In this document: positions 5,687-56,310 of the stretch, in pieces
Numbering within the stretch: position 1 is the stretch's first letter
How the letters are laid out: each line of letters opens with the position of its first letter
Assembly (NCBI RefSeq): GCF_048593235.1
Contig: NC_133617.1
Coordinates: 6,825,607-6,889,606, forward strand
Direction: 5' to 3'
DNA from: Sminthopsis crassicaudata
Lineage: Eukaryota
Length of the DNA stretch: 64,000 nucleotides
Notes under the pieces: model-generated
Database searches by the model: none
Told to the model about the DNA's origin: nothing
What the model saw: the letters and a program-made list of their open reading frames with translations, nothing else
Made by a program: the position numbers and the translations under genes

Positions 5687-7504
<1,818 letters not shown>

Positions 7505-15647: not shown

Positions 15648-15853
15648 CCCGGCTCAGGACGCAGGGTCGTAGGCCCCGGCGGCGGCGGAGAAGGAGCGGA
15701 GCGGGACAGACCGTGAAAGAAGAGGTTGCGGAGGGAAAGAGGAAGCGGAAATTTCGTTTGTTTTCTCCTCCCTCCGGTTCAGGAGGTGCCTCGGCGACAT
15801 GCAGAGGCCTCTGGGAAACGTAGTCCTGAGGCTAGAGCGGCTTCTGCGCTTGC
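15648..15853 (-). promoter_or_regulatory. Gene A promoter and non-coding exon 1 (donor GTGAGT at 15647)
   Basis: CpG island; NRF1-like GCAAGCGCA (15853-15845); ZNF143/SBS-like ACTACGTTTCCCAGAGGCC from 15824; pyrimidine-rich initiator near 15750. Confidence 0.7.
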
Positions 15854-16899
15854 TCGGGTTCCGTGGCCCCGCCCAGCCTGTGGAACTGTGGTGCTGGATC
15901 TTTTTTCCGTCCTTCCTCTGGCCAAGCTGCCGCCCGAGGCTGACTGGGCCCCCTGGTGCGGAGGCTGCTCCTTTTGGAGCAGGTCCCTGGGGCACATGGT
16001 TGTTCCATAGTCCCCGCGCCCCTTGCCCCTCCGCAGGAGAGGCTTCCCGGGATGGGAGGGGCTGCATCTCTCCTCCCCAGCAGGCCGCTTAGCACCCAGG
16101 GCTGGAGGGAGGGAGGGACAGATGAGAGTGGGACTGGGTGCGCAGGTGCAGACGAGGGGGCGGGGAGGCAGCAGGGGAGTGGGGGGGGGGGTGCCTCTTC
16201 AGAGCACGTGCACGCCGGGACTAGTGCACGCCGGGACGGCTGCTTGTGTCTGTGCGGCCTAGCTGAGGGAGCAGTGCGGGCGAGGCAGTCGGGGTGCGGC
16301 TGCCTCCCTGGACGCCCGGGCCCCGCGCATGAATCTCCTTAGCTCCGCGGTGCCCTGGCCAGGTCCCAGGAACGATCTGCCTGCAGCGCAGATGTCTGAG
16401 CCCGGCCGCCAGGCTCTCCGGGGCAAGGAAAACGGCCCTTTGGCGCTTCCTCTGATAGGACAGAAAAGAAGGCGTTTTCTGCTGGGCATGCCTGGTCAGC
16501 TCGGGCAGGTGAGCGGGGGTGGGAGGGGGCAGTTTCCCCAGCATTAAAAAGAGCTGCTCCAGCCCGGATTGAGGCACGTTGGGAAAGAAGTCAAGTGGGG
16601 AGGATCTGGATTCCAATCCTACTTCTGAACCATCAGTCGAGTGACCCTGCTGGGCAAATCTTTTAAAATGCTCTGGATCTTATTTTCCTTACCTCAAACA
16701 GCCTTACCTGAACAGCCCCTCAGATCACTTCCAGCTCCACATGTGAGAGCCTGATGAAAAAAGTCTCTGTACTCCAACAATCCTTACAACATACGCACAT
16801 GTGCCTAATAAAGAGTCCTAAGATTTGGATTTGGAATCTTAAGAAATTGGATCCCTTCCATTTGGAGTGTCTTAGGAAGATTTGGAAGGTCACCTAGCA

Positions 16900-17290
16900 G
16901 GATAAGAAAAAGTCACTGAGGTCCTTTCATCGACTAAACTGCCATACCTTCGCACTGCCCCATGGAGCACAGCCCTTTTGGGCCGGCCACATCGTTGGAA
17001 AGCCAAGCCAATGCTTGCCAAAATGACTTACGGAGAACTCCCATGGCAAGCGCTCATGTGGTGCTCAGAAAAAGCAATACAAGGAAACTGAGTCTCAAAA
17101 CCCCTGAAAACCTTCGTATCAATTGTGGAGACATGAGCCCAGGACCACCCAACAAGACACAGCCTCATCAGAGAAAGCGCCGAGAGCAAAGGAGATCAGA
17201 AGAGAAGTGAAAGGCGCAGTTAGAGAATCCATGGTATTTATGCCTCATTTATGGTAGAGCCCTCTGAGCTTGTATTAGTCTACTGGCCAC
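16900..17290 (+). mobile_element. RTE LINE 3' ORF remnant
   Basis: Translates to 'QPFWAGHIV..CLPK..SHGKRS.GAQKKQYK', matching the RTE C-terminal 'QLRWAGHV..LPK..GKRS.GGQKKRYK' pattern. Confidence 0.8.
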
Positions 17291-17654
17291 AATCAGATGC
17301 TCTCTAACTTGACTCTAAAGTAGTGATGTGGATGAGATGCATGAAATCATCTGCAAAAAATTCACATGCCTGGGCCACCTTTGCAACAAGGTTGGCAAAA
17401 AGCTTCGTTTTGTCATCCTAAGACTGGTAAAGTTGGGGAAAGACGCAGGTTCCCTAGCAGAACTCCCATTTAACTAGTAAAAGAATATAACTTAAAGCTG
17501 TAAAATGGGAAAATAGTAGCAATAACTATCATTGAGTATTAGAAGTTTTTTTAAAGCCTTTAAACTCCAAAAGTCCCCACCTGGCTGAAGAGTGACTTCT
17601 ACTATGATTTTGATCAGTTGCAAGAGAAATATAGACAGAACTCCAATAAAGTTT

Positions 17655-18340
17655 TTTTTTATTTAATTTTTATTTTATTTTATAATTATAACTTTTTTTT
17701 TTTGACAGTACATATGCATGGGTAATTTTTTACAACATTATCCCTTGCACTTATTTCCCTTCCTCCCTCAACCCCCTCCCCCAGATGGCAGGCAGTCTTA
17801 TACATGTTAAATATATTATAGTATATTCTAGATACAATATATGTGTGTAGAACCTAATTTTTTGTTGCACAGAAAGAATTGGATTCAGAAGGTAAAAATA
17901 ACAGTTTACACTCATTTCCCAGTGTTCCTTCTCTGGATGTAGCTGATTCTGGCCATCATTAATCAATTGGAATTGGATTAGCTCTTCTCTATGTTGAAGA
18001 AATCCACTTCCATCAGCATACATCCTCGTACAGTATCATTGTTGAAGTGTATAATGATCTTCTGGTTCTGCTCGTTTCACTCAGCATCAGTTGATGTAAG
18101 TCTCTCCAAGCCTCTCTGTATTTCTCCTGCTGGTCATTTCTTATAGAACAATAATATTCCATAACCTTCATATACCATAATTTACCCAACCATTCTCCAA
18201 TTGATGGACATCCCTTCATCTTCCAGCTTCTAGCCACTATGAAAAAGGCTGCCACAAACATTTTGGCACATACAGGTCCCTTTCCCCTCTTTAGTATTTC
18301 CTTGGGATATAAGCCCAGTAGTAGTATGGCTGGGTTAAAG
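17655..18340 (-). mobile_element. L1 3' fragment (ORF2 C-terminus and 3' UTR)
   Basis: ORF 18013-18261 'MFVAAFFIVARSWKMKGCPSIGEWLGKLWY' is the L1 ORF2 C-terminus; poly(T) at the left end. Confidence 0.92.
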
Positions 18341-18358
18341 TTTTTTTTTTTTTACCAT

Positions 18359-19164
18359 TGTCTTCTGAGAGTATGGTCAAATGTGACAAGACCTCCCCTT
18401 AATCCTCCTGAAGCTATGGTTGGAGGAGGTAGCTTAAGGACAATGGCACACATCCCTTCAAATATCTCTCCAATCATATATTCTGCCCAACTCATTCCTT
18501 GATGGCAAACATATTTCTAAATCTCTGCATGGGGTTCCTGACTCATCATTCAAAACTTTTGAGAATACTCAAGGTCATGGTTATAATGTTTTTTCACCTA
18601 AAAGCAGGGGAAAATACAGAGGCAAAGAGCAGAAGCCAGCACTCCCAGGTCCTCTGTGCGCTTCCCTGTGCAGAGGACTTTTCCCAATCCAGGGACTTAG
18701 AGTGTGTCTTACTCCAGTACAGTCAAGTAGACAAAAAAACAAAGAGACTTGGTCTGGCTGGTTAGGGTCCTTTTGATGAGATTTGGAAAGGAGATAGCTT
18801 AAGATCAAAAATACCAACAGGAAATTCCTTTTTTTGGGAGAGACTGAAGGAGATAACAATAGAGAATTTTTGTCTTATTTACAATAATAAGAAAATTCCT
18901 GTCTTGTTTACAACAAGTGAATTCTTGTATTATTGACAAATATCTCCGGAACCTCTTGATAACATCTCTGTGCAAACATTGTTTTGATGACTCTAGTCAT
19001 CATGTATGTATATAAGGAAGGCTGAAAAATGAAATCTTTGCATTTGATATATACCAGCCAAATGCCCGTCAACTGATGTCCCCCTTTTCAGGCATTTTGG
19101 GTCTTCCTGAAGGCCAAATGCCTGTCTATCCCTTTACTATCAATAAAGACTTTGTTTCCATACA
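18359..19164 (+). mobile_element. Probable solo LTR
   Basis: TATATAA at 19009, AATAAA at 19142, ends in CA; 3' end shared with the element at 19797-20164. No clear target-site duplication. Confidence 0.5.
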
Positions 19165-19796
19165 GCATTAAGTAGCAAATTCCTTTGCTTCTGAACCCTG
19201 CCCTTGGTTACTTTGGGGAAGGGAGGAGAGAGAGAGAAAAGGAACTGACCCATCTCGGTTTAGAACCTCAGTTTACTCCTCATCACTTTGACCCTAACTC
19301 ATTGTAATTAAGCAGCCAATTAAAAGTTCATTTCTTGATCAGCTCCCAGGGACAAGTATACATATCTTTCAGCTGCACTCAGCCACACTTGGTGTTTCCC
19401 CAAACTCAGAAAACTGACAAGTGACTCTCCTTCGCCTCTTTTTTGGGTCTTGGCCCTCACTCATCCCAGCCCAGGATGATCCTTATAAGGACAAAATCCC
19501 TGAGCAGTAACACAGCCTTTACCCAGACCTTAGGGAAAACACTGTGGGACAGTGGGGGGAGCCAGGAAAGGTGACCTCCGAGGTTCATTCTGAGTAAGCT
19601 CTCCTGGCCAGCCTCTCCAGTCCCATACTGTACCCCCCCTTTCCCACTACACTAGGTGAAGAGTAGCCTCCTTCCTATTGATGAGGAGTAAACTGAGGGT
19701 CTAAACTGAGATGGGTCAGTTCCTTTCAGGAGGTCTAATTATCTCTTTCTCCTTCCCAAAGTCCCAACGGCGGGGTCCCTTAGCTACTCAAGGCTG

Positions 19797-20164
19797 TGTA
19801 GAAACAAAGTCTTTATTGATTAGAAACACCGGAGAGTTGTGGGCAAAATGGCTGCAAGGTACAAGGCCAGTTTTGCAAAGAATAGATTTTTGAGTTCTCT
19901 GTTTTATACAAAGCACAATCATTCAAATGCATTGATGTGAGGAGGTTCAGGAGAATGATGTAGTTAAGATAAGGATTCTCTTGTTATCTTTTGAGTAGAG
20001 ACAGAAGTCTCTTCCCCTGCTGTGACATTTGGTCTGTGTGAGCAAATTAGAATGGGGGGCTGTAAAACTCCAACCAGTTCAGATAGCCCAAACTAGTTTG
20101 ACCACATCAAAGTCCAAGTCCCAAATGGAGTTGGAGATCAAAAAAGGAATATCAAGGGGCTACA
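19797..20164 (-). mobile_element. Probable solo LTR related to 18359-19164
   Basis: Minus strand begins TGTAGCC and ends 'caataaagactttgtttctaca'. Confidence 0.5.
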
Positions 20165-20177
20165 GCCCCCATCACTA

Positions 20178-21083
20178 TTACAGACTCTTTCTCTTCCAGG
20201 CTCAATCCACAGATTTCTCATGCTCTCTGCCCAGACCATCTTTTTCCTTCCTCAGAGCTCCATGACTGGCTCAAAGGCCTCCTCCTGGCCCTAACCACTG
20301 CCCTCATCCTCATCCAACTCCACACTGTGACCTCCAGGCCCTCTGTTCTTTCCCAGGACATCTCCCCTGCATAGCTGTTCTCTTTTTTTTTCTCCTCATA
20401 CTTCATGTGGAATTGTGCACAATCCCCATCTCTCAAGCCTCAACCCCCTCCCTAGATTGCCAAATTGCTCCTTCTATCTGTGCTGCTGCATGAAGACGAA
20501 GAAAACCATATATATCGCTGTCTTGAGTCCACACAAATTCACATTACAACGACTTTAACTGGTGTTAGGCAATCCTTCTACATGCCTCCCTTACCAATTC
20601 ACTAAGTTTTCTGGACTGCAAGCTCAGTATTACTTGATTATGGACATGGAAGCAAAAAGGGGGGGCAGGAAATCCCAGGATGCCTTAAGAGAAGCAGAGT
20701 TTTCAGGAATATAAAAGTGGTAATTCCATTGTAAAGTGCCTTGGTCAGACCTCCTCTTGAACATTGTGTTCATGTCTAGGACCACAGTTTAAGAACTGTG
20801 AGAAGCTAGAGAGGGTTAGGAGGGCAACCAGGATAAGTAAAGATTGTGGTGAGTAAAAATGATTCTGAGAAAAAGATTTCTCTGGGAAGATCATTTTAAG
20901 TTTAATTCATCATAATCATAGCGTTTTACTGGAGATCACAGTGTGGAGTTGGATGAGGATGAGGGCAGTGGTTAGGATAGAGAGGAGGGCTCCAGTCATG
21001 GAGTTCTGAGGAAGGAGAAAGATGATCTGGGCAGAGAGCATGAGAAATCTGTGGAGTGAGCCTGGAAGAGAGAGGGTCTGTAA
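20178..21083. repeat. Inverted repeat: arms 20178-20336 and 20930-21083
   Basis: The reverse complement of the right arm matches the left arm at roughly 85-90% by eye. Confidence 0.85.
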
Positions 21084-21446
21084 GAGGAAGGAGGCTACTC
21101 TTCATCCAGTGTGTGGGAAAGGGGGGGCACGGTATGGGACTGGAGAGGCTGGCCAGAGGAGCTTCCTCGGAACGAACCCCGGAGATCACCTTTCCTGGCT
21201 CCCACCAAGTTCTAATCTTACTACTTTGTTCTTAAATTAATTTTGCTCTTTCCAATGGACCAAGAAGCTCTTGGAACAAATGTATAGTCAAGTAAAATCA
21301 ATTCCCTAATTGCCATGAGGTGTTTGTGTTTCTGTGATCTCCACGTGCAGCCTGAATCCATCACCTCTCCATCAAGGAGTGACTGACAGCTTCAGTCCTG
21401 GGGGCTCTGGAATTTGGTCAGAATTCTTTCAGTTTCTTTATACTTT

Positions 21447-22076
21447 TGATGAGATCTAGAATTGGGGTACCTAAATGAAATTAGGTTTAATTGAGATCTA
21501 GTGGCAGGTTGGGGCACAGGGAACCAAATAGAGCTGTCCTGCAAGCCCTTTGGATTCGGTGCAGGAATATGGAGTTCAATAAGGTCTAGTGGGGGGCAGG
21601 GGCAATAGTCCACTAAAGGAATTTACAGACCCGAAAACCTAGATTGATAAAAGACGTTTATTCTGGAGTTTGGAAACAAGGTTAAGGTCTAGTTAGTAAA
21701 AGGTGAAGGGAGAGGTAAGAGGGCACCAGAAACAGGTTTCCAGCGGGCAGAGATCCTTGGCGTGCCAGGCGTAAGGCAGCCATGTTTGGAACCTCCGCAA
21801 AGAGAGGGCTCCAGTCTGGCTCTTTTATAATGAGAGATTTAGCTAAAGGGGTCTGCGGGTGGAGTCCCGCGGGCTCAGATCCCCTGGGGGCTTCGAGAGC
21901 AGGGATTTCCTATTTGAATTCAGTTATGCTTTTGACCAGCATGATTTGTGAATCAAAGGTCCTGGCTTCTTGAATTGTTAATGCATCAGCCCGGATGGGG
22001 CTGGGAATCAGAAAGGAATAAATCCATCTGAAAGGACTAGTTTCTTAAAGGGAGCACAACCCCCAACAGTTTCACA
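21447..22076 (-). mobile_element. Solo ERV LTR immediately upstream of gene B promoter
   Basis: Minus strand starts TGTGAAAC, has TATAAAA near 21805 and AATAAA near 21658, and ends ..TCATCA. Boundaries approximate. Confidence 0.65.
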
Positions 22077-22175
22077 TTGTAAAAGTTTCTCTCCTGCTGC
22101 ATCATTTCGCCTATACGGCCTCAGATTCTTTAAAGGTCAATTGTTCACCTGGGGGAGGTTGGCTAAGCGGACTCT

Positions 22176-22418
22176 GCACATGCGCAGCACTGAACCCTGA
22201 CGCCGGACTCCATTTCCCAGAAGGCCTTACGGGCACATCCTTTCTCCTCCGGCAGAGTAGGGAGGAGTGTGAGAGATAGGGGAGGAGGGAAAGAAGGAGG
22301 GGAGGGTCCCCTCACTTCCGCCACATCAGGGCCCCGCCATCCTGCGAGTTTTCGTTGTCACCGGTTCCATTCCTTCCTTAGCTGTCGGGGGCACTTGGGC
22401 CGCGGAACTGAAACCGGA
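22176..22418 (+). promoter_or_regulatory. Gene B promoter and non-coding exon 1 (donor GTAAG at 22419)
   Basis: NRF1-like CATGCGCA ending at 22186; SBS-like ACTCCATTTCCCAGAAGGCC from 22207; start of a CpG island. Confidence 0.65.
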
Positions 22419-23600
22419 GTAAGCTGGGGCCGATCCAATCTTCCAGGGAGGGGAAGAGGAACAGGGTTGGCCCCGAGTGCGCAGTCCGAGCTTGCAAGCC
22501 CCGCCCCCCTAGGCGAGCGTGTGCGCCCATTGGTCAACGCCCAATTTCTCTACGCCCACTGGGCGTCGCCGTAGCGTTCTCACTCCTACCCGGGGTCTTC
22601 TGGGTCCCCCGCGATCCCCACCAGTCTTAGCGGCCCGTGCGCTCCCCTTAACGGAGGTTCTAGACCCAGAGAATCCTGGCTGAGGTGGGGAGTCAGTCCT
22701 TCCCTTGGAGGAACGCCCCCTGTCCCTCCCCCTCCATCTCCTGACTTGTCCCGGGTCATGACCCCGGGTGTCTGATCCTACTCTAGTCCTGGGCTCGGCC
22801 ACGCCTCCTCATTACGGGCACTCCTCGGGGCTCCGCCCCGCCCCCCTCTAACCTGGGGTCCTACTGCTATGAGGGACTCCCCCCAGACCACGTGACCATT
22901 CTCGGGTCTGATTTTGAATCCGCCCCTCCCACCTCACTGGCTGTGGGGGGAAAGAACGCTAAAGGGGGGACGCCGCCCCCGTGACCCCCACCTCCCAGGG
23001 TTGGACCCCTCCCTATACCCCCGCAGTCCCTGGCCCTAGGACGGGGTGAGGCCTTCAGCGCCCCTGGGGACCCCCCCCAGCGGGGCCCCCCTCTTCATTC
23101 CTCCCGTGATGGGGTCCCCTGAGGCAGGCGCGGAGCCCGCGCGGAGGACGTGCTTGTGTGCACAGACGGAGGGCGCTGGGGCTGTGCCCCGTGGGGGGGT
23201 CAGCACGTGTGGGGAAGGGTACAGAGCCTGAGCCCCGCTTGGGGGCTCTATGTTCCTGGGGGGGCTCCGGGCTCCTTGGGGGCCTCTGGTCTGGGCCATG
23301 GGGCCACATCCTCTCCTTGTGTCTGCACCTTTTCTATCCGGGCAGGGAATCCCCGTATCCTCCCCCCAAACTCTTCCCTACCACCTGGCGGACCCTCCCG
23401 GCCCCCCACGATGCTTGTGCCCTTCGGGGTCCTTTGACCCCTGCTCCCTGACCTGCCCCGGGTCAGTGTGGAGGAGCCCTCCGTCTGCCCACGTTACTGC
23501 TGGGAACCCCTCAGGCCGACCTCGGTCCGGATCCAGGGGTCTGGCCCGCGGAGGGCCCGGGTCTGGCCCGCCCTTCTCAGCCCGTCCCTTTCCTCCCCAG

Positions 23601-23693
23601 GCCGGCCTCGGACGGACTCCCCTTTCCCCAAGTGGAGGGCGGCCTGAGGAAGGCGGGATGGCGGCCGTGCCCCCCGCGCCCGGGGCCTGTCAG
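23601..23693 (+). CDS. Gene B exon 2 with start codon (ATG at 23658; MAAVPPAPGACQ)
   Basis: 'ctccccag|GCC...gggATGG...CAG|gtaag'; 36 coding nt, phase 0. Confidence 0.85.
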
Positions 23694-24572
23694 GTAAGGG
23701 GGGGCCTGGCTGGAGACACCCCCCAGACCGCGCCAGAGGGGCCCCCAGGCCGCCCGTGGGACCGGGAGAGGGAGCCTGGAGGCGGGAGGGGGGAGGGGCC
23801 GCACTGACTGAGGACCTGGAATGTTCGGGGCGGCGCTGGCCCACAAGTCCCTGGGGGGGGGCCCTGCCTGCACCTCCCCCTCCTCCTCCCTCCCTAAGAA
23901 AGCTCTGTCCCCAGGAGCGCCGCCATCCCCCTGCTGTCCTCCACCAGAGAGGGTGGGGCTCGGGTGGGGGGCGGGGCTCCTGGGGGCTGCCTCCCCCTGC
24001 CCCCCCCATCCAAGCCCAGCACGAGCTGCCCCTCCCCCACTGGCCCCGACCTGGGGCAGGTCCCGTGGGGGGCAGCCGGCCCTGACAGAGGAGGGCAGGG
24101 GAGCGGGCAGCGCTCGAGCGCCCCCTGGGCCTCCGCAGGGGAAGCTGCCCCCGGGGGTGGAGGTCTCATTGCCCCCTGTGACCCTGGGAGCCCCGGGGCT
24201 CAGGCTCAGCGGGATTTTGGCCGTGGGGGTTTTCTTTGTTTGGGGGACTCGCCGAGGGTCACTCGGCGCCCGGAAGGGTCGGGGCCTCCTGCCTGTTCTG
24301 GCCGAAGCTGCCCCAGAATCAGATTTTTAGGAGAATTATTTTTCAGAGTCTCCCCCCCCTTTTCTCCTTTTATTCCGGGTCTGTTGCTTCTTATATAAAG
24401 CAAGTTCAGGGAGCCATTTCTGAGGGCAGGTGGGCGCCTGGGGCCCCTCCCCCACGGCTGTAGGAGAGCAGTAGAATGGGGGACGCCTCAGGACCGGAAT
24501 CCGGCCGCAGCTGCATACAGCAGGAGCCCACTGAGTGTCCCGGGGCAAGCCCAGACTCTGGGACCCCCCTGA

Positions 24573-24806
<234 letters not shown>

Positions 24807-25014
24807 TGAATGTGGGGGGCCGGGTGGGGCCAGGGGCAGCTCCTAAGGAGAGGCCTTTGCTCTGCCCACGGGTGAGACCCCTTGACCCTCTGGGCCCCCA
24901 AGTGCCGGTGGCGGCAGGGAGCATGATGCTGGAGCCCTTCTGGAGGGGCCGGTGCCCCTCTCAATCATGGCCACTTTTCCATGGGGCTCCAACGTTCCCG
25001 TTTCCCATGGGCAG

Positions 25015-25110
25015 GGCTTGCTGTCTCCAGCCCCCACATGGTCTGCCAGCTGGAGCGAGGGGAAGGACCGTGGGTGCCCGAGGGAGACGCCCCAGGGAGC
25101 AGCCGGGCAG
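25015..25110 (+). CDS. Gene B exon 4, KRAB-B box (96 bp)
   Basis: LAVSSPHMVCQLERGEGPWVPEGDAPGSSRA, nearly identical to gene A; donor GTGAGT. Confidence 0.92.
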
Positions 25111-25275
25111 GTGAGTGAGGCCGGTGTCCCCTAAGGGCCAGGGACCTGTGTGGCCGGGTTGGGGAGGGGGCTGAGCTGCTTCCTAGAGCCTGTTCCCCTC
25201 CCCTGGGCCCTTCTCAATAATTAAAATAAAGGTAATTGTATTGGGATGAGAAATAGATCAATAATAGTGGGAGAA

Positions 25276-25647
25276 TGTTAGGTTCTTACTAGGTGATAAG
25301 TCGGTACTTAACAATTCTCTAGCTCCGTTCATACCTTTAGTTCACATCTTTAAAAGGGGCAAGTTCATTGGTTGTAGGAGTTCCCACAAGCCCATTCTCT
25401 GGGAGGATAAAAAGAGTCTGGATTTGGGTCAAGGACTAGACTTCCCAGGAGAACTTCAAGGAGAACTTCAGGGAAGCTGGAGGAGATTCAGAGCCAGGAT
25501 TCAGGAAGGAGAGGATTCAAGATTCTACCTTCCCTCTGGCTGAAGGCTCCAGAAGCCTCCCAAGAAACCTGCTCATAGAGAAAAGGATTTATAGAAAAGA
25601 AACCTTCTCCCAGAGAAGGATTACAACGAGAGGACAGAACATTTACA
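25276..25647 (+). mobile_element. Probable solo LTR in gene B intron 4
   Basis: TGTTAGG...TTTACA termini; inverted CCAAT and ATAAAA promoter-like core. Confidence 0.55.
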
Positions 25648-26411
25648 GGGGACTATAGCATACCCATTTCAGACATAGACAAATTAACGCAAAAAAAGAG
25701 AGACATTAAGTACTTGCATAATACCTTAGGAGGAGAGATAGATATGACTTTGTGATTACTGAATGGCAATGGAATTTACATGAAGAATTCTCTCTACTAG
25801 TCCATGGCACCTTTACAAAAGTCGACCATGTAAGCCTCACTATAAAATGTTGAAAAGCAGGAATGCTACTGAATACAATGCAATAAATGCTACATTCAAC
25901 AAAGGGCCTCAGAAGAAAGAATTAAAAGTAATTGGAGACTAACACAATTGTAAAGAACTGGGGGTGAGTCAAAAAACAAATTGCAACAACGGAAAAATTG
26001 TCATCAAAGGAGATGACAGTAATGAGAAAATATACCAAAACGTATTTGATGGAGCCAAAGCAGATCTGAAGATAAATTTTATATCTAAATGCGTGTATCA
26101 ACAAGAGACAAAATATAAATAAAAAATACATATTACTTAAAATATTAAGAAAAAAATCAAAAATCCCAAGTATAATTCACAATTTAAAAAATTAAAGAAA
26201 ATTGTCAGAATCATTACTAATTCTTTCACCCCTAATATGTCAATAAAACTGCTAAATAGGTGAGTATTTACAGAAATATAAAATATGTGTATTAACAAAA
26301 GAACTAGATTGTTGAAATAACCCAATATCAGAAAAATTTAAATTTTTTCTCTTCTTTTGATGTCCTACCAGATTTTATCTAATAATAAATCTAACAACAA
26401 ATAATTCTAAT

Positions 26412-27418
26412 GGGGCAACTAACTGGTACCGTAATAAAGTGTGGGGCGCAAAGTCAGGAAGACCAAGCTTAAATGCAGTCTCAACACTTATGGCTGGGTG
26501 ATCCTGGGCAATTACTTTACCCTGTTTGCCTGGATGTCTCATCTGTAAAATGAGCTGGAGAAAGAAACAATAAGCCACTCCACTATCTTTTCCAAGAAAA
26601 CCCCAAATGGGGTCACAAAAATTCTATGGAAAAACAGCGGAATAATAACCACAAAAGTGTTTGAAAGAAGGCCCCAGGATTGAGGAGGACTGAGAAAATA
26701 GAAGCTGGGAAGATAGAACCTTAGCTGAGACTTGCTGGCAGGTGGGAAAAACCAGGAAGCAGAGGGGATGAGTTGGAGGTTCCAGGGTTGGGGAGACCCA
26801 TAAAAAAGCCTGGAGTCAGCAGAGTGGAGTGAACTTGAGAAGAGCCACAATGCTAGGTCACTGATACAAAGTGGGGAAGAAGGGGCTCTGGACTGGGGGC
26901 TGACTGGAGACTGGACTGGACAGGGGAGACAGAGGCAGGCAGATCCCTCAGCAGCTGCTGCAGAGGCTGAGCTGTGAGGTAATGAGGGCGCACAACAGAG
27001 CGGTGATGATGTCTGAGGAGAGGAGGGGATGTACATGAGACTGGATATTCAGGGTGAGAATGAGTAGATGGGGATGATACTGGGGAAACTGGGAGGATGA
27101 CGGTGTCCTTAACATTGTAGATGTTAACAAGGGGGGAGGTTGGGTTTTTGTTCCTTAATGCTATTTGGACAAGGTATTTAATCTGCTAGCCTCAGTTTCT
27201 TCTCTGTAAGATGAGGAATTTGGAGTCCATCAGAAGTTTTAAACCCAGAATCTGTGAACTTTCAAAGAAATATTTTTAAGTGTATATCTACTTGGTTATC
27301 ATGTGATCTTTTATATTTTACTTTATACATTTAAAAACATAATTCTAAGAAATGATCCACAGTTTTACCAGATTGCCACAGGGGTCCATGACATACAAAA
27401 ACATTTAGTACTCCTGGA
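26412..27418. mobile_element. Mar1/MIR-type SINE (26412-26625, +), L2 remnant (26650-27125, -), hAT/MER5-like MITE end (27245-27418)
   Basis: CORE plus 'aagaaaaccccaaatggggtcac' tail; L2 endonuclease-like minus translation; terminus 'ggggtccatgaca..aaaa..tactcctg'. Confidence 0.6.
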
Positions 27419-28034
27419 CGCGGTAATCTCCTAATCTCTTGTTCCCCTAACAATCTGTGAATCAGCCTGTCTGGATCAGATTGTCACAAGGTGCATTCTT
27501 TATGTGATGAGCTGAAGTAGCCTCTGTGTTTTCCATCCATTTCTCCTGTTTTTCCACTCTTGTTGGTAGAGAAACACCAAGCATGTGACTTGGACACTTC
27601 TTGGCATGATCTGAGCCTCCCTTTCCAATTTTAGAACATCCTAACTGATTTTCCTTCTCCATGTTGTAACCAAGGAAATTGAGGCTCAAGGATTTGCCCA
27701 TAATCCCATAGCTCATATCAAAAGCAGGATTTGAACACAGTTCTTCTGGTGTCACCAACGCTCAAGAATTGCTTAAGTTTCTGGCACATCATAAAGATAG
27801 GCAGGACACTTTCTAGGCCTATCTCCAGGCCCAGGCCTCCAGGATGCAGTTGGCTTTCACTAGTAATGGGGACAACAGTAATATGAATGTATGTAGCTCT
27901 TGAAGGATTGTGAAAATACTTATTCTTCCAGCACTCAGGTAATTTTTGCTAAGAACCTTCCTTGATAGGGATGTAAATAAAAACTGTACAGCAGGTCACA
28001 GGAAGGACATTTAGTTTTTGTTTCTTTCTTTCAG

Positions 28035-29254
28035 TTTGGGAAACTAGGCTGGCAACCAAGGAGTCAGCCTCACATCTGAGATTTCTGACACAAGAATCCT
28101 CTCAGGAAAGACTAGAAAGGGATAATCCCTGTGACTTCAATTGGGGAGAAGCTCAGAAATGTGGTGCTCGTTTCGAGAGGCAGCAGGACAATGGGAAGAA
28201 TGCCCTGAAATATGACATACATACAGAGATCAAGTGTAATGAATATGGGAAACCCTTTAATTACATACCAGAACTCATAGAATATAATATGCCAGTTCAT
28301 ACTAGAGAGAAATGTTATGAATATAAGGAATATGGGAAAGCCTTTTCCAGGAACTTACAGTTTATTGAAAATAAGAAAATTCATCCTGGAGAGAAGTTTT
28401 GTGAATGTAAACTATGTGGGAAGGCCGCCTGCTACTGCTCAAAGCTTGATCAACATCAAATGCTTCAAACTAGAGAAAAAATGTATGTATTCAATGGCTA
28501 TGAGAAAGGCTTCCACCAGAGATCAGCACTTATTCAGCATCAAACTATTCATTCAGGAGAGAGACCTTTTGAATACAGTGAACCTGAGAAAATCTTTGGT
28601 TCAAAGTTAATAGGACATCAACAAATTCACCCTGGAGAGAAGCCTTATGAATGTATTGACTGTGGGAAGACTTTCTCCCAGAGCTCACAGCTTACTAGAC
28701 ATCTTATAATTCACACTGGAGAAAAACCATATGAATGCAATGAATGTGGGAAGGCTTTTCGAAGAAGCGCTGGGCTTAGTCGACATCAAACAATTCATAC
28801 TGGAGAAAAGCCTTTTGAATGTAAAGAATGTGGGAAGGCCTTTAGGCTTAACACAGCACTGACAGAACATCAGAGAATTCACACTGGAGAGAAACCATAT
28901 GAATGCAGTGAATGTGGGAAGGCCTTTAGCCAGAGCACACAGCTTAATCGACATCAGAGAATTCATACTGGAGAGAAACCCTATAAATGCAATGAATGTG
29001 GGCAGGCTTTTGGCCAAAGAGCACATCTCACTCAACATCAGACTGTTCACACTGGAGAGAAACCTTACGAATGTAATGAATGTGGGAAAGCTTTTAGTCG
29101 AAGTACAGGCCTTACAGGACATCTGAGAATTCACACTGGAGAGAAACCTTATCAGTGTAATGAATGTGGGAATAACTTTCGCCTGAGCAAACAGCTTACT
29201 CAGCATTACAGAACTCATACTGGAGAGACACCTTATGAAGGTGAAACCTTGTGA
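28035..29254 (+). CDS. KRAB-ZNF gene B, exon 5: about 5 degenerate and 7 intact C2H2 fingers. Full CDS = join(23658-23693, 24645-24771, 25015-25110, 28035-29254), 492 aa
   Basis: Acceptor 'ttctttcag|TT TGG GAA'; frame is open from 28037 into the 321-aa ORF; spliced CDS is 1479 nt. Confidence 0.93.
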
Positions 29255-30561
29255 ATGTAAGATTTTACCTTTGCCAAAAATTAATAGAAATCCTGTAGAA
29301 GAAGGAAATCTGGTTAATTTTCCACAGAAACAGTTCCAAACCATTTCATCCACTCTTGAAACCGAGACCACCCATTTCCCCCAAATAATTCACATTGCAG
29401 AGAAGACTTACTCTTTAATATACTTAAAAAAAAAAGTTGTCACAATCTGACAGGAGTTTGCTCTCTTTTTTCCTAGTCATAGAGAAAGGTTTGCTCCTGC
29501 TCTTTGAAACAGCATTTCCTTTTTTTTGTTTCCAAGATCTTCTATCACTCATATGCCATTTGCAATCAGTCTACAAATCTTGTCAGTTCTGTATTCATAA
29601 ACCATTGTTCTTATCCACTCAACACATTTGGTCACAGATCTTCTCATGTGTCAAGAAAACCTTTGAAATAACCTCTCCATTAATCAATGTACTACAGATT
29701 GTGCTGTCAGAATAGCCTCTTAAAGCAAAAGCCTGACTCTGAAAGGAGTCTATTTGAAAGGTTTCAGTGGCTTTTTGTTCCCTCCTAGGTAAAATAGGAA
29801 CTTATTTTAAGGGTGCTTAAAGCCCTTCATATTCCAGAATCATCCTGCCTTTCCAGATGAACTTCACAGTTGTTTCCCTTTGCTTACTTTGTATATTCCA
29901 ACCACAATGGCCTATGTTCCCTTCCATGGAGATGATATCATCCCCTTCCTTTGTGCCTTTACACAAGCTGTTTCCCCTGTGCCTGGAATGGCCCCCCTCT
30001 TCAGCCTCTTAGACTCCATAGCTCTTGTCAAAGCTCAGATCAAACTTTGGATGTTAGGCCTTCCTTGCTTATCTCAATATTGTTTTCTTGTGACTCCAGG
30101 TTTCTGTGCTATATACCAAGTATCTCTCCCTAATCCCAATCACTTTGTCCCTATTTATTTATTTATTACTTTTATTGCCAAACTCCTGGGAAAATCTTTT
30201 ATACCATTAGCTCCACTTCTTTTCTTCCCACTCATTTCTCAGCTCCTGGAAGTTTCTCATTTTTAATCCTTCCATTCTCCTGAAATGTCACCCTTTGGGA
30301 TTCCTACCAGTGATAGTTCTGTAATCATAATGATGATGGCACTGTTGCCCTTTATATACCATGGATGTATTACATGTCCTACCCCCTCCAAGGTTCCCAT
30401 CATTTCCACCCGAACAATAACCTGACAAACAGGTTCAAAATAGAATTTCCCTTGGTTCCTCTGCCTTTTGAAGGGTGAAATAATCTCCAAGGCAAGTCAA
30501 GATGCTATTTACTGCTTTGCTCTTGGTGGAGCAAGAGAGAAGAACTCGGACCTTGGGGCAT

Positions 30562-31337
30562 TTAAGGAAGCCCTCGGTGCTTCAAATGGTGCTTCTGGGC
30601 CAGGCTTAGAACCTGTTCCCCAAACTCCGTGTCTCTCTTCTTTCTTTCCAACAAGGTTGTAAGATGACATATGCCACTCACCAAATCATTTCTATCTCCA
30701 TAGACCTTGAATGTTCTCTGTAATGCTCCTGCTCTGGTTCCTGATTTGCACACGTGAAATCTGCCTTCTCCCTTTACCTGTGGTTTCTGTTGAAGGTAAA
30801 CGCCCATCCAAGCCATGGGCAGGCTTTGTCCTTATCCCAGTAAGTCTCATTGCTATCTGGGAGGTCAGACTTGACCCCTGGCATTAAGACCTGGCGTTGC
30901 CTTTGTGAGGAGCGACATGAGGTTTTACTACTGGCTCCTTTCTGGAGTTTGGTCTGCTGTGAATCTCTGAGTGATCTGTCATTCTGCCTTTGAAGATCCA
31001 CATGGGCAGCTTTCTCTCCCTCCTCTCCCTATATATAAAGGGTGTGTGTGAGAGCATGTATGTATAACTGGGTGTTGGGGAAGCTCTCTGCTGGCAAACA
31101 GGAGCTCAGCCCAAGCTGCTTTACCTGAGCTGCTGGAGGGGCTGGGGAAGAGCAAGGCAGGTGCTCATCGGGGATGAGATGGGCTGTACCCCAACTCCCT
31201 CAGTCAGACCTGCCTGGCCTGGGGCTTCTCCAGGCTAGCGAGTGAGCTCCGGGCCGCCTTCACCAGAGACCCCATCAGGAAAGCGCTTCAGGGCCAGAGG
31301 GGCGACTGAGGAGACCTTGGGTTACTGAGCTCACATC
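30562..31337 (-). pseudogene. Possible decayed two-exon relic of a ZNF-type gene (exon 31337-31125, 96-bp intron, exon from 31028)
   Basis: GT-AG intron with phase-0 frame continuity; three in-frame TGA; degenerate finger-like 'CPWLGWAFTFNRNH' and 'VKGEGRFHVCKSG'. Confidence 0.35.
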
Positions 31338-32579
31338 CTGAGGGAGATGCAGCTCCGAGACAAGGATGCTATTGCTCTTCCCATTGCCTGCCCCAGGAAC
31401 AGTATGTTTTTGCCAAAAGCTTATCTTTATAAAGCTTATTCTACATTTCTCTTCACCTACCCTTTAAAATCATTATAAAGATAAAACTCTCTTAGTCTTT
31501 TTATTAGAGGTCTACATTTGTTTTATTGACTTAAATGTGGGCTGAGGGGAGGAAGTAATGACTCTTATGCACCTTTGCACATATCCTGTCCCAAGGGAAG
31601 TGAAGTGACTCCCACGCCTTCTTAACGCAGCCTTAGGACATCCCTTTCTGGGTATTCTCCTAGTATCTCTTCTTAAGTCCTATCTGGCAGTCAGCTGGCT
31701 TCCTGTCATGGAAAATCAATGTAGCAAAGAGAAGGGCTGTAGCTTGTCTCCTCTGGCTAAGATCAGATAATCACTAGAATATCCAACTGTCAGCTGGAGG
31801 CTCCAGGTAAACAAAGGTTTTAGGTCATATCTGGATTTCCCTCCTTGGGCCAGAGAGCCTGAGGCTATTTGAATAGGGGGAAAAAAAGGTAGAATTAACT
31901 GTTCAAGAGTTGGTTGCCTTCAGTGCTGAGATTGCTTCTGTAGCATCAGAGGGGAGAAGAGCCAAGGGAAGGAGTTATAAAGAAAGTCACACCTGAAGAG
32001 ACATTGGGAACAAAGAGCACTGCCGTTCCAAAGGTGGGAGCCAGTGTGGAGGGAATAACTAGTTTTGCTAAGTCAGGACTCTGCACACTGCACAGCTAGG
32101 AGCCAAACACCAACAGGTATTAGAGAGCACTTGCCTGAGGAGTTTTTTAACTTTTAAAAACTTTTTCTCAATTTAGAATCATAATGTTTTAATCCCTTCT
32201 CCCTGCTATTCTTGAGCCTATAATTTTTTTTTCTTTTTTCCTTTTTTTAAATAATTCTATACCATTTGTTTTGATGGATTGATTTTGGAGTTTAATAAAC
32301 TTTTTTTTTTTTTTTAATAAAATGTCTATGTCCTTTCTCGATGAAATTTAGTCTAATTTTATTTTAAATTCTATTTCAACTTCTCTTTTATTTTTTCAAA
32401 ATTTTTAGGAGGTGATCTGCCCGGTGCTTTCTGAGAAAGGAAAAAGAGCTGGTCCAGAACCAAGAGAAAGAAAGGGTCCGGCACAGGGAGGGGGAACATT
32501 TGAGTCAGTAAAGGAGGGTTGACCACTGACCATTGAGAGCAGTCTGCCACTTCCAGAAGGGGCAGTTCACCCGTAGGTC

Positions 32580-34845: not shown

Positions 34846-34884
34846 AGATTTTTTCCCAGTTTCTCCTCTGAGCCTATCACTGTG
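34846..34884 (-). other. 23-bp-spacer recombination signal sequence (RSS) of the V pseudogene
   Basis: Perfect heptamer CACAGTG (34884-34878), 23-nt spacer, nonamer AAAAAATCT (6/9 match to ACAAAAACC). Confidence 0.8.
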
Positions 34885-35905: not shown

Positions 35906-36001
35906 GTGGACATGCTCTGCTTCCTGAGGCTCTGGAATGGCACCAATACTGCTTATGGCCACCCCTCTTCTCATAGGGACAGAGGGTGCCTTTAGGCAAA
36001 C
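35906..36001 (-). promoter_or_regulatory. Degenerate V-lambda promoter
   Basis: Octamer-like GTTTGCCT (6/8 match to ATTTGCAT) about 90 bp upstream of the leader start; CATAAG TATA-like box about 50 bp upstream. Confidence 0.55.
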
Positions 36002-37350: not shown

Positions 37351-38548
37351 ATTAGGAGCCCTGGAGTTCTGAATATAAAGGAAGGAAAGAAACGAGCACT
37401 GATTAACCCCCTGCTGTGTGCCAGGCGCTTACTAACCAACCTGATCTCCTGGATCCTCACGACAACCTCGGATTGCTGGTTTACAGAAGAGGAAACTGAG
37501 GCAGACAGAAGCGAAGTGTTCCGCCCGGGGTCACCCTGCCTGGAAGTGCCTACGGCCGGATTGGAACTTGGCTCTTCCAGACGCGGCCCAAGTCCGCCGA
37601 GGCTGATACCGCCTGCGGGGCTGTGGGCAACTGAAGTACTTCCCAGGCACCAAACCCATCCCCATCCTGGGCCAAAAGCAGCCCCGCCCCCTCGCCTCCC
37701 GCCCCGTCCCGAGGCCCTAAATCCTGGACAGCGCCTGGGGACCCGTGGACTGAAGGAGGGAAAGGGGCTCCCCTTTCTCCGAGGCATTTAGCACGTGACG
37801 TTGCCGTGGGGGTGCCAGCGGCCCGGAGTGGCTGGAGGGCGGGGGGAGGGGCCCAGGGACGTGCCCCGGGGACGGCTGCTAAGGAAAGTTTGAATGTCAA
37901 AAGTTCATTCGGGGCTCGCTGGGCACCACGACGGGGGCGGCCCCTGGGGACAACCTGGAGGCTAAAAGAGGGGTGTCCCGGAAGGGGTCAGGCGGTGCCC
38001 TGGGGGGCTGGCTCCCTCCCCCCTCCCCCCCCCCTCCCAGCAGCCCGGACTGCGGCCAGCACCTCGGCCAGCGCCCCAGCGAAGCCCCGCCCTCTCGCCA
38101 GTTTCACCGAGTCCCCCCTGAGGGGAGGTAGGGAGGAGGAGAGAAAGGAGGGGCATCGGGAAGGAGTCCGCTTCTCCCCGCCCCGCTGCTCCTCTCGGAC
38201 AGGCGCCCAGCTCGATGCCCAGCCAGGGCCCCCTGTGCGGCTCAGCTCGGGCCAGGAGCCCCGGGCCGCGCTCCCAGGCGGGACTCCCCATCATCGGGCG
38301 GAGGATGAGGGGAGCAGACCCTGCACTAGCCGGCTCGGGACGCTCCAAAGAGGGCGCTGGGCCTCGGCCCCCGGGCTCCTGCCCCGCCTCCGCTGCCCCA
38401 GAGCCGGCTGGGCCCCCAGTTTTAAAGAGCAGCTTCCAATTCACACGGACAGTGCTAGAGGGAGGGCAGCCCGGGAGCAGGCGAGGGGCGGGGCTGGAGC
38501 GGGAGTGAGCTCACCGCCCCGCCCACCCCTCGCCGGCGGAGGATCGAG

Positions 38549-38758
38549 GCATGCGCACCAGGCCGCCCGCTCTCCGGACTACCGTTCCCTAAAGGCCGCT
38601 CGGCTGGTCCGCAGATTGTGGGCCTAGTTCCGTCGCGGTTACCGTGGAAACGGCACTTCCGTTCCCTCCCAGATTCTCGTCACCCTCTCGCTCGCGGCCG
38701 CCTCCGCGCAGCCCTGCCCTCAGCGGCGGCCGCAGCCCAAACCCTAGTACGTGTCAGG
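38549..38758 (+). promoter_or_regulatory. Gene C promoter and non-coding exon 1 (donor GTGAGT at 38759)
   Basis: GCATGCGCA at 38549-38557; ACTACCGTTCCCTAAAGGCC from 38578; ETS CACTTCCG; CpG island. Confidence 0.72.
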
Positions 38759-39411: not shown

Positions 39412-39498
39412 ATCTGCCTTCGGAAGCCCCTGCGGCGGGACAGGGTGAGGAAGAGGAAGGCCATGGCCCCCGTGCTGCTGCCGGCCAGGGCCCGCCAG
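39412..39498 (+). CDS. Gene C exon 2 with start codon (ATG at 39463; MAPVLLPARARQ)
   Basis: 'ctccccag|ATCTG...gccATGG...CAG|gtgag'; 36 coding nt, phase 0. Confidence 0.88.
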
Positions 39499-39560
39499 GT
39501 GAGGGGGGAGAGGAGGAGGGGAGGGCGGCAGGGGAGGGGGCAAAGGGGAGGGGGCAAAGG

Positions 39561-52309: not shown

Positions 52310-53085
52310 AATTACATCTAAATGATCAAAGGATATGAAGAAACGATTCTCCAAAGAGACATAAAGACCATATGATTGCCCCAAATCACTGATTATAAGT
52401 GAAATACGAATCAAAACAGCCCCGAGGTTTTAGCTCCATTTCAAGTTGGCAAAGATGACAAAAAATGAGAAGGGTTGGTGCCGGAGACTTAGTGGAAAGA
52501 AGGACACCCCGATGCATTGTTGGTGAATGGTGAGTCAGTATAACCGTCATGGAAGAGCCGTCTGGAACCCTTCGATTCTAAGATTTCACTGCTATACCTA
52601 TAACCTGCCCCAGTCAGTGTCAAACAGGAGGGGCCCACATATACCACGAGATCTGGTGGCAAAGTAGATGCCCATCCATTGGGGAATGGCTGTGCCAACT
52701 GGCACATGGACATAAGCTTGGGTGCCGTAAGAAATGTGAATACAGAGAACCCTGGGAAACTCTCCAGGAACTTACTCAGAGACAAGAAGAAAAGGGTCAT
52801 GTCGACTCCCACATGAAAATGGAGAGAACTGGAAAGCTATTTCAGCGGAATATTCACCAGTGCACTGGTAAAGACCACAGCTGGGCCCAAAGAGCAGAGA
52901 TGAGAAGACAGCTCTCCTATTCCCCTGCAGAAGTCCGAGGATGTGGCTGTGAAATGCTGTGTAAACCCGACACTTTTGGATATCTGAGATTTTTTCCCCT
53001 TTTATTATGAGCTTGGGAGGAATAGAGAGGAAAATGCAGATGATGTAAAATACTATACCAATAAAATTTATTTTTAAAAAATTTC
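52310..53085 (+). mobile_element. Old L1 3' fragment
   Basis: Remnants of L1 ORF2 C-terminus ('aaatcactgattataagtgaaatacgaatcaaaaca', 'atgcattgttggtga') and A-rich end. Confidence 0.7.
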
Positions 53086-54391
53086 TACCTATGAGACACT
53101 AAGCTCTATAAAAGTAGGGATTGTGTCTTAGAACCAAGATTTATCTTCTTGGCACTTGACTTGGTGCTTTGTACAAGCTTCTGGACAGGGCCTGGGCTTG
53201 TGATTTTGGTGGCTTTGAGAGTGAGGAAAGTCCCTCCTTTAATGCAGATCGGATTCTTCTCAGCATCCGGGAATCTAACCAGACTCCCCTCCGCTGGGTG
53301 TGGCAGAGAACTCAAATCTAGGTGGTCTTGGCTTCACAACTCCCTAGCCATTACAGTGCACTGCGCAGCTACACCAGCTCTACGGAGCGGAAGCATAATG
53401 TAGATTGACTTGAATTCTCTGCCAGAAAGGTTTCACTTCTACCTTAATATGCCAATTCATACATTTCTGGTCTTCTGGGACAGTCTCCCTAGATTTATGG
53501 ATAAGCCAATGGCTCAGTGGCTCCCTGCAACACCAACTGATAATCTCCTTGGAAAATTGCCCCACCACCAAAATCAGCTCGCCATTTACCCTTCTACTAG
53601 CTTGCCTATAAAACCAATGTTCTCAGTCCATCTTAGGGCATATTTCTTAAATCTTTTGGCTTAAATGAAGGGCCTTCTCCCTGGGGACTCTTCCCAGGTA
53701 TATGCTATCCCGAAAGCATTTATAATGGTTGAGCAGGTAGCATCACGGCATTATTGTTCCTGACCTAAGCCTGCCAGTGGAGAACTATGTAATTGCAAGA
53801 AACTGAGCCTGAGTCGCTGAGTCGGCGTTGGATAAACAGCAGCCAGTGTGAGCGCAGCTGCTTGGGGGACGTAAGTGGGCTGGTTTGTAACTGTCTTAAA
53901 AAACAACTAAATAGACATAGGTTTTATTCTTATTTGTGTAAGTGGATGTTTGGTGACAGTTATGAAGGCTAGAATTTTAAATGGTGGTTTTCTATTTAAA
54001 ATGCTACATTTAACCATAAAATCTGATTATGGTCCTATGGAGTTTTGAAATAGAAACGGGGTCTCAAACTCCTGTGTACGCCCCCCTAAGTTGTCTTCAT
54101 GGGCCTCGGCCACTGCATGGTTTTTGGTCCCAGGGAAAGGGGGCTCTCAGGCCGTTTGCAAAGCTCGGGGCCCACACTGGTCATCCTTCGCTGAGATTCA
54201 CCGCCCAGCCCTTTCCATGTCGTGCCCCGTCCCTCCTTACCCTTCCCATCCCTTTGAAGCTTCTCGGGTTTTCTCCATCCCGCCACCATCGGCCCTCCCC
54301 CCTCCCCTATACAAGTTCTCCAAGGGAAGCTCCTTGAGGGCAGCTATTTCTTAGCGCAGAGCTTGACTCAAACATTCTAAGTGCTACTGCA

Positions 54392-54798
54392 CCCAGAGGC
54401 CCGCACTCTAACAGTGCCCGGCCGCGCCCAGGGGCCCAAACGCCTAACAGGCCCGTGCCGGGGCTGGTGCCCAGAGGCCCGCACTCTAACAGTGCCCGGC
54501 CGCGCCCAGGGGCCCAAACGCCTAACAGGCCGGTGCCGGGGCTGGCACCCAGAGGCCCGCACTCCAACAAGCTCAGTGCCCGGCGGCGCCCAGGGGCCCA
54601 AATGCCTAACAGGCCCGTGCCGGGGCTGGCGCCCAGAGGCCCGCACTCTAACAGTGCCCGGGCCGCGCCCAGGGGCCCAAACGCCTAACAGGCCCGTGCC
54701 GGGGCTGGCGCCCAGAGGCCCGCACTCTAACAGTGCCCGGCCGCGCCCAGGGGCCCAAACGCCTAACAGGCCCGTGCCGGGGCTGGCGCCCAGAGGCC
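54392..54798. repeat. 78-bp GC-rich tandem repeat, 5 units plus a partial unit (78, 78, 84, 79, 78 bp)
   Basis: Unit starts (CCCAGAGGC) at 54392, 54470, 54548, 54632, 54711 and 54789. Confidence 0.95.
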
Positions 54799-55946
54799 TG
54801 ACATTTTCAGGGAGCCGATATTTGAGAAGCGGAGCAGAGCCCAGAAGTGCCCGGATTTGAGGGAGGCTGGGAAGGGTTCCTTGGAGAGGGGGTCCTGAGC
54901 TGAGGCGGGAGGGAGGCTCTGGGTGCTGCCCGGGGCCGGCCGTGCCAAGGGCGGCGCATCCACTGTCTCCTTCGTGGCGCAAGGTCCCGTGCTTGGCCAG
55001 CGTGGTCGAGGTGATTGCTGCCATCCCACCGGTCGTGTGGAGACTGGGGCCTTGGGCACGCCGGGAGAGGACATGGGGAGGGGCTGTTCCCCGTGATTCC
55101 CGGGCAGGGGGCTTATGGCAGGCCCTGCCTCAGACCCTTAGTATTTGACTCTGGCCGCTCGCTTCCCCTCTTTGTCGCACAAGGTTCTTATACCCAAACC
55201 AGACATTTGAAAGCCCTTAGGTGGTGCCCGGCACATAGAAGGCGCCTAATAAATGCTTGTTCTCTTGGCGCCCCCTCCCCCGTGTGCCGCAAGGTAGACA
55301 AGCGCAGGCGCACTCGGGCCGCGGCCCCGCCCCTCATCCTGCCCCGGCCAGTGCCTTCACTTGCTCCTGGGCTGCGGGAGCTGGGGGAGGGCGTCAGTGA
55401 GTGTCCGCTGAGGGGGCCGGAAGTGCCCGCCGCCCCACGGGCAGGAGGTGCAGCCCGGATGCTGATCCCGCCCCCTCCCCAATCTTTCCCAATTTCCAGG
55501 GCCCGGCTCGATGCTCAGCGGCGGAGGGAGTCCCAGGCCCGACGCCGTGCCGGCCGCTTCTCCAGAGGCCCGGCCCACAGTCACCCTCTGGGGGACCCCG
55601 GCCCCTCCGCGCGCACGGGGACGGCTCAGGACGGCGAGGGGCCCCGCTTTCCACGGGCTGGGCCGGCCCTCAGGGACTCGGCTTCTCGGAGGGCGGGGCT
55701 CCCGGGGGGAGGACGGAGGGTCCGCACCAGACGGGGCGGGGATCCCTCACGGGATGGGGGGCGCGGCTTCTAGAGTCCCCAAATCCCACCGGTCCCCCGC
55801 TTCTTCCGAACCCCCTGCGCCCATCGCGGGGTCCCCGCCCTCGCAGCTCGGCCACACGCTCCCCCGCCCGGCGTGCCCCTTTTCCTTAGAGGGCGGGGGC
55901 CGACCCGGGAGCCCCTCCACTCCAGTGGGCCGGAGGCTGGGGAGTG

Positions 55947-56310
55947 CGTGACGTCATCTCTCCTTGAACCAGACCGGGCGGCCCCCAGCGCTTCCTGGGC
56001 ATGCGCACACCTGGCCCTGGCCACCGCACTACGTTTCCCGTGAGGCTTTGCCGGACTCTGCCCCGCCCTCCATCCGGGGACGACCATGATCCCCCAGGTG
56101 AAGGCGGGGCCGTGGCTCGGGGTGGAGCCTGAGACTGTCTCCCTCCCCCTCGGAGCGCGCGGGCCTGGCTCGGACTGCGACGCTTCAGGGCCCTGAGACC
56201 CCCCCTGGCCGTGGCAGTGACCTTTACCCCCGGAGAGTGGGGGCGGTGGGCTCCGCGGAGAAACTGCGCCGGGCGGTGAAGCGGAGACTTCGAGAACCTG
56301 GCCTGCTCGG
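55947..56310 (+). promoter_or_regulatory. Probable gene D promoter and candidate exon 1 (donor GTGAGA at 56311)
   Basis: CRE GTGACGTCA near 55948; GCATGCGCA at 55999-56007; ACTACGTTTCCCGTGAGGCT from 56028; CpG island. An opposite-facing ETS site (CCGGAAGT, near 55417) suggests bidirectionality. Confidence 0.55.

Follow-up and report, generated by a model that had tools for sequence, protein, structure and literature searches.

In the 64-kb window analysed here, the whole of a stretch of 64,000 nucleotides (nt) of Sminthopsis crassicaudata DNA, four C2H2 zinc-finger genes, designated A to D, carry in their promoters the same pair of short blocks: an upstream GCGC block resembling an NRF1 site and, about 20 nt downstream, a block resembling SBS2, a site of the ZNF143/THAP11 type. 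Judged from their sequences, the four sites probably derive from a single composite core-promoter unit that was passed on as marsupial KRAB zinc-finger (KZNF) genes duplicated, and in which both sites would be constrained and the spacing between them soft. The position-locked pair was also found in orthologous promoters and in those of unrelated marsupial KZNF genes, which sustains the shared promoter unit proposed by the initial annotation of this DNA, and the distance between the blocks is loosely held, at 18–21 nt with occasional escapes. The further proposal that selection maintains a distance of exactly 20 bp was not supported, since it is 21 nt in the gene C promoter of five species and 19 nt in the gene D promoter of two, and varies in other promoters.

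Two blocks shared by the four promoters

The composite pattern GCGCA-N20-ACTMCNNTTCCC matched the window four times, at positions 15813–15849 on the minus strand and 22182–22218, 38553–38589 and 56003–56039 on the plus strand, against no match in 100 dinucleotide-preserving shuffles, which bears out the equal distance of 20 nt in the four genes. In each of them, a block ending in GCGCA is followed by a 20-nt spacer, by ACT(A/C)C-nn-TTCCC and then by AGGC, and the whole module lies inside a CpG island, sense-oriented toward the zinc-finger gene. A looser scan of the window for the downstream block alone gave no good copy beyond these four. Direct reading of the window confirmed both the positions of the sites and the spacer sequences quoted by the initial annotation, and two of its details could be refined: the AGGC after TTCCC is present, but in gene A it is separated by 2 nt and not by 3, and the upstream block, described as GCGCA, does contain this motif but is longer, reading (G)CATGCGCA in B, C and D and CAAGCGCA in A. 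When the ±175 nt around the four sites were aligned, only the two blocks aligned convincingly. The origin of the module from a transposon or another repeat was rejected because of this lack of alignable sequence outside the two blocks, and a second, degenerate SBS upstream was likewise discarded, there being no TTCCC in register.

The module of gene A, on the minus strand, starts with the NRF1-like block GAGCAAGCGCA (15845–15855), the weakest of the four, with one mismatch to the NRF1 core GCGCANGCGC, which is separated by the spacer (15825–15844) from the SBS2-type site ACTACGTTTCCCAGAGGCC (15806–15824), directed toward the gene. The other three modules are placed on the plus strand. That of gene B comprises the block GCACATGCGCA (22176–22186), identical in Sarcophilus, the spacer (22187–22206) and an ACTCC variant of the SBS2-type site (22207–22225) that is kept in Sarcophilus. 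Gene C carries the block AGGCATGCGCA (38547–38557), with a GCGC core that does not vary among six marsupials, the spacer (38558–38577) and the SBS2-type site (38578–38596), and gene D presents the block GGGCATGCGCA (55997–56007), the spacer (56008–56027) and the SBS2-type site (56028–56046).

Xie et al. reportedly gave, in 2005, RCGCANGCGY as the NRF1 consensus, and an NRF1 site was considered here to be a ten-base palindrome of two GCGC half-sites (GCGCATGCGC; RCGCANGCGY). Over the nine specified positions of the core GCGCANGCGC, a single mismatch was counted in each of the blocks of A, B and D and two in that of C; all keep a complete 3′ half, TGCGC(A), beside a degenerate 5′ half. Perfect GCGCCTGCGC decamers were observed at the matching position in unrelated marsupial KZNF promoters. 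Concerning the downstream block, an SBS2 presents ACTACA directly 5′ of TTCCCA in a fixed register (ACTACANNTCCCA), and this arrangement was found as ACTAC-nn-TTCCC in A, C and D and with ACTCC in B; in gene C, 14 of the 19 columns of the site are invariant across six species. From the 3′ half of SBS1 (AGAATGCATTGCG), the window sites retain AGAAGGC, AAAGGC or GTGAGGC, which fits the AKGC part, while the distal ATTGCG is not conserved. Motif comparison thereby supports the resemblance to NRF1 and ZNF143/THAP11 sites that had been claimed for the two blocks, and NRF1 and THAP11/ZNF143 are the factors that these blocks would recruit. It was reported that SBS2 corresponds to ACTACAN plus SBS1 and that ZNF143 is bound at 114 KRAB-ZNF promoters of human chromosome 19 (PMC3627581), so that the presence of SBS2 at KRAB zinc-finger promoters is expected for this family.

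Distance between the blocks across marsupials

Distances are given here, as in the initial annotation, as the number of nt between GCGCA and ACTAC, and the ten-mer gap, counted from the end of GCGCANGCGC, is one larger. Orthologues of gene C were found by means of a query with the non-finger tether in Sarcophilus, which shares 89% amino-acid identity with the window species, and in Dromiciops, Monodelphis, Vombatus and Trichosurus. The gene B distance was 20 nt both in the window and in Sarcophilus. For gene C, the 20 nt of the window were one short of the 21 nt found in Sarcophilus, Dromiciops, Monodelphis and Vombatus and of the equivalent of 21 nt in Trichosurus, which has a GCGCG variant; for gene D, the distance was 20 nt in the window and in Sarcophilus and 19 nt in Dromiciops and in Vombatus, the last one also with GCGCG. 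Expressed as ten-mer gaps, all window sites are at 21, the five gene C orthologues at 22, and the gene D series reads 21, 21, 20 and 20. Spacer length was therefore not equal across instances and orthologues, as it would be in a rigid composite, and the four equal values of the window arise in part from a lineage-specific one-base difference in gene C, which makes the common value of 20 partly a coincidence. No eutherian orthologue of gene D was among the search matches.

Further KZNF loci were obtained from Monodelphis (L008), Sarcophilus (L009), Dromiciops (L010), the manatee (L007) and the bat Rousettus (L011, with two promoters), and every SBS2 inside a CpG island of the fetched loci was scored for NRF1-like decamers, with gaps measured from the ten-mer end. 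The Monodelphis promoter (L008:24502) presented GCGCCTGCGC at a gap of 20 and a second, overlapping copy at 14. In Sarcophilus, a perfect decamer was found at a gap of 20 (L009:11631) and NRF1-like decamers at 21 (L009:11549), 19 (L009:5054) and 15 (L009:5170), while one promoter (L009:4948) had no NRF1-like site; in Dromiciops (L010:10012), the NRF1-like site was at a gap of 5. In terms of the distance used above, these unrelated promoters fall at 18–20 nt, apart from the outliers of 14 and 4. Altogether, 7 of the 20 NRF1-like matches fell at ten-mer gaps of 19–21, against about 0.12 expected if matches were uniform (±250 bp, 12 independent SBS2 sites), and the control motifs of the same promoters, GC boxes and ETS cores, were scattered from –137 to +139. 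An NRF1-like site near –20 was absent from all three eutherian SBS2 promoters considered (manatee L007:5598, Rousettus L011:9797 and L011:41256), a very small sample in which the preferred spacing was not found to extend beyond one paralogous family or lineage.

Both blocks are conserved across about 80 million years of marsupial evolution. In the gene C promoter, mean pairwise identity among the six species was 0.86 for SBS2, 0.80 for a downstream 70-nt block with an ETS core, 0.78 for the NRF1-like block, 0.73 for the spacer and 0.55–0.60 for the flanks. In 240-nt orthologue alignments, 11 insertion or deletion (indel) events were counted for gene C, one of them in the spacer, and 10 for gene D, with one or two in the spacer. 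About one spacer event was thus observed per gene tree, against 0.9–1.0 expected from the flanks, a frequency that shows no visible selection against length changes of one base. The sizes of these events were different: every one of the two or three spacer events was of 1 nt, and 14 of the 18 flank events were of 3–22 nt. We interpret this as constraint on both sites, combined with a distance that drifts by about one base but does not tolerate large changes.

Paralogous spacers, moreover, preserve a weak residual similarity that speaks for common descent, and the statement that they have little sequence in common proved to be overstated. The four spacers of the window share 8–10 of their 20 positions, and eight marsupial spacers showed a mean identity of 35%, against 28.7 ± 1.8% when shuffled (p about 5e-4). 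A further sign of descent is a CACGGAAC motif just upstream that gene A and the Monodelphis promoter have in common.

Explanations for the loosely held distance

The inherited composite unit would consist of an NRF1-type GCGC element, with its 3′ end about 20–21 nt upstream of a sense-oriented SBS2, the latter being ACTACA joined to a ZNF143 site and the target of THAP11/ZNF143/HCFC1, and this pair would be accompanied, within a CpG island, by GC boxes and ETS sites whose distances vary. NRF1 and THAP11 were classed as chromatin-opening CpG-island factors (bioRxiv 10.64898/2026.05.04.722487), and NRF1 and THAP11/ZNF143 were described as ubiquitous, chromatin-opening and able to shape start-site choice (bioRxiv 10.64898/2026.05.04.722487; PMC11160661). 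Being ubiquitous CpG-island activators, both factors may open a single nucleosome-free region, and the likeliest function of such joint opening would be the broad and coordinated expression of these genes. The proximity of the sites would then be kept because large indels would separate or destroy them, and not by a rigid contact at exactly 20 bp.

Some observations weigh against this inherited unit with soft spacing. The sample was small, with about 12 independent marsupial promoters and three eutherian ones, and the positional statistics overstate independence because all KZNF promoters are related by descent. In addition, no orthologue of gene A was obtained; the query with its whole zinc-finger array returned thousands of paralogues. 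The upstream blocks of the window are only partial NRF1 palindromes, with a degenerate 5′ half and, in gene A, a central AA. Finally, the gene C spacer is about as conserved as the NRF1-like block (0.73 versus 0.78), so that it may hold information of its own.

It seems unlikely that the distance was passively inherited, with the two sites selected independently, the spacing unconstrained and the 20-nt spacer being simply a small target for indels. This would account for the agreement between the indel frequencies of spacer and flanks and for the residual homology among paralogous spacers, and a rough random walk of ±1 nt, run at the rate seen among orthologues and scaled to the divergence of the paralogues, predicts that spacers differ by about 1 nt, as in the main group of promoters, a result that agrees with the soft spacing as well. 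Nevertheless, all the spacer events were of 1 bp, as were only 4 of the 18 flank events, a difference with a chance of about 0.01–0.05, and the flanks of the paralogues are unalignable, with GC-box and ETS distances that vary by tens of bases while the module distance does not.

A more elaborate possibility, which we regard as similarly doubtful, is a marsupial-specific composite in which an NRF1 dimer and THAP11/ZNF143-HCFC1 would assemble cooperatively at about 20–21 nt with a tolerance of one base, perhaps through a bridge of HCF-1 and PGC-1/PRC-type coactivators, providing a cluster-wide coordinated control that eutherian KZNF promoters would achieve differently. Coactivators of the PGC-1 family also bind NRF-1. 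Complexes of PGC-1/PRC coactivators with NRF-2/GABP are mediated by HCF-1 (review PMC10904817), and a protein bridge between the NRF1 and ZNF143/THAP11 sites is conceivable.

The strictest version of cooperative binding, in which selection would keep exactly 20 bp, or two helical turns, for a fixed contact between NRF1 and ZNF143/THAP11, is very improbable. A change of 1 nt turns the two sites relative to each other by about 34 degrees, but the spacer has fixed changes of this kind at the same frequency as the flanks have fixed indels; besides, the distances of 21 nt in gene C and 19 nt in gene D of other marsupials, the spread and the outliers of unrelated promoters and the three eutherian SBS2 promoters devoid of the upstream site are not what a rigid contact predicts, and no published NRF1–SBS spacing peak was found. 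What such a contact would explain is the value of exactly 20 nt in all four window genes and the restriction of orthologous spacers to 1-bp indels beside flank events of 3–22 bp, and the possible HCF-1 bridge to PGC-1/PRC coactivators would provide it with a physical basis. The helical-phase arithmetic, by which centre-to-centre distances come near three or four turns, was given no weight, since some centre pair always fits.

We also consider it quite improbable that the GCGC block is something other than an NRF1 site, such as the site of another CpG-island factor, the mark of an initiator or of a start site farther upstream, or one portion of a longer footprint covering the spacer as well. 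The partial palindromes of the window and an orthologous spacer conserved almost like the block are compatible with this, but the complete GCGCCTGCGC decamers at the matching position of unrelated marsupial promoters fit RCGCANGCGY, and the differences among paralogous spacers argue against one long recognition site. As to a start-site mark, translation of isoform X2 of Dromiciops gene D (P0135, L003:32906) is predicted to start at the ATG of gcATGcgca, within the block, giving a protein with MRTPG at its N-terminus, and this implies that the transcript model starts upstream of the whole module, and one human promoter was reported with a start site 28 nt upstream of the ZNF143 site (PMC11754675). 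The annotated gene starts of the fetched loci are coding-sequence (CDS) starts, uninformative on transcription initiation.

Known promoter elements and neighbouring features

ZNF143/THAP11 sites at KRAB zinc-finger promoters are already known, and a position-locked NRF1-type partner was not found described; the literature search revealed no report of an NRF1–SBS2 distance preference or of this composite. The closest relative is the SBS2/M4 motif of ZNF143, THAP11 and HCFC1, which is similar to the window core ACTAC-nn-TTCCC-AGAAGGC and also occurs in sense orientation in CpG-island KRAB promoters; however, the published motif ends at ACTACA, with no GCGC element described about 20 nt upstream, and the window sites do not preserve the ATTGCG at the 3′ side of SBS1 (PMC3627581). 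An NRF1-type GCGC element likewise accompanies a ZNF143 site at promoters of ZNF genes in the case described for ZNF324B and LRRC45, in which, however, the NRF1 motif and the ZNF143 29-mer overlap and the two factors compete for binding (PMC11754675). The window block, in contrast, is placed some 20 nt upstream of the ACTAC end, which would allow both sites to be occupied together. Similarly, the NFY–USF pair at 17–18 bp and the ACTACA-to-SBS register, both found with TF-COMB, are cases of two ubiquitous promoter motifs with a preferred distance and orientation (PMC9358416). In comparison with those composites, the spacing observed here is soft (18–21 nt plus outliers) and was found in marsupial KZNF promoters only.

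TF-COMB also described opposite-strand THAP11–ZNF143 pairs about 61 bp apart (PMC9358416). In Sarcophilus, the sites at L009:11549–11631 form a convergent dyad, in which two SBS2 face each other over 83 nt end to end and each arm has its own NRF1-like decamer on the outer side, at a ten-mer gap of 20–21, generating a larger palindromic unit; the four window promoters have a single SBS2. In Monodelphis, two tandem ACTCCATTTCCCAGAATGCC sites, 65 nt apart, are found on the minus strand at a KZNF gene start (L008:1457–1522), outside a CpG island and without an NRF1-like site.

If the pairing proved to be genome-wide, it would represent a natural case of soft motif syntax, in which two CpG-island activators are held within 1–2 bases for at least 80 million years in a fast-duplicating family, and the natural spacer variants of 18–21 nt, together with the outliers, could be used as a test series. 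Marsupial and eutherian KZNF clusters would then have the SBS2 core in common and differ in its partner. At present, the module stands as a modest regulatory annotation and not as a demonstrated mechanism.

Concerning the genes behind these promoters, gene A, on the minus strand, has a KRAB-A exon at about 12664 and a finger open reading frame (ORF) at 5687–7459. On the plus strand, the KRAB-A exon and the finger ORF are placed at about 24651 and 28289–29254 in gene B, and at about 42156 and 45502–46788 in gene C; gene D, on the same strand, has a finger ORF at 60375–60932 and no intact KRAB-A exon. Gene D carries instead a degenerate KRAB-A-like stretch, VAVTFTPGEWGRW, at 56205–56276 (in the frame of 56133), about 180 nt downstream of its SBS2, and a matching AVTFTREESGLLGPP is encoded by the Dromiciops isoform P0135. 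Gene D thus seems to have been a KRAB gene in the past, with a KRAB exon that at present adjoins the promoter. With KRAB in A to C and a KRAB-A relic in D, all four genes are members or descendants of the KRAB zinc-finger family.

The downstream conserved block of gene C, with the ETS-type ACTTCCG, spans 38621–38690 on the plus strand, shows no variation among six marsupials at 40 of 71 columns, and is part of the core promoter of this gene, outside the claimed module. It is the best-conserved part of the promoter, reading GTTCCGTCGCGGTTACC-TGGAAAC and then ACTTCCG-TCCCTCC, and the ATG that serves as CDS start in the Sarcophilus and Monodelphis models, which falls within it, reads GTG in the window. 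In the gene D promoter, at about 56068, the window lacks some 20 nt including an ETS-type CACTTCCG, a stretch kept by Sarcophilus, Dromiciops and Vombatus about 45 nt downstream of the SBS2. Finally, intron 1 of gene C contains a 1.9-kb minisatellite (39566–41459) with about 110 copies of the 18-nt purine-rich unit GGGAGGACTGCCAGGGGA, which explains why GC and AT skew are extreme at 39–42 kb.

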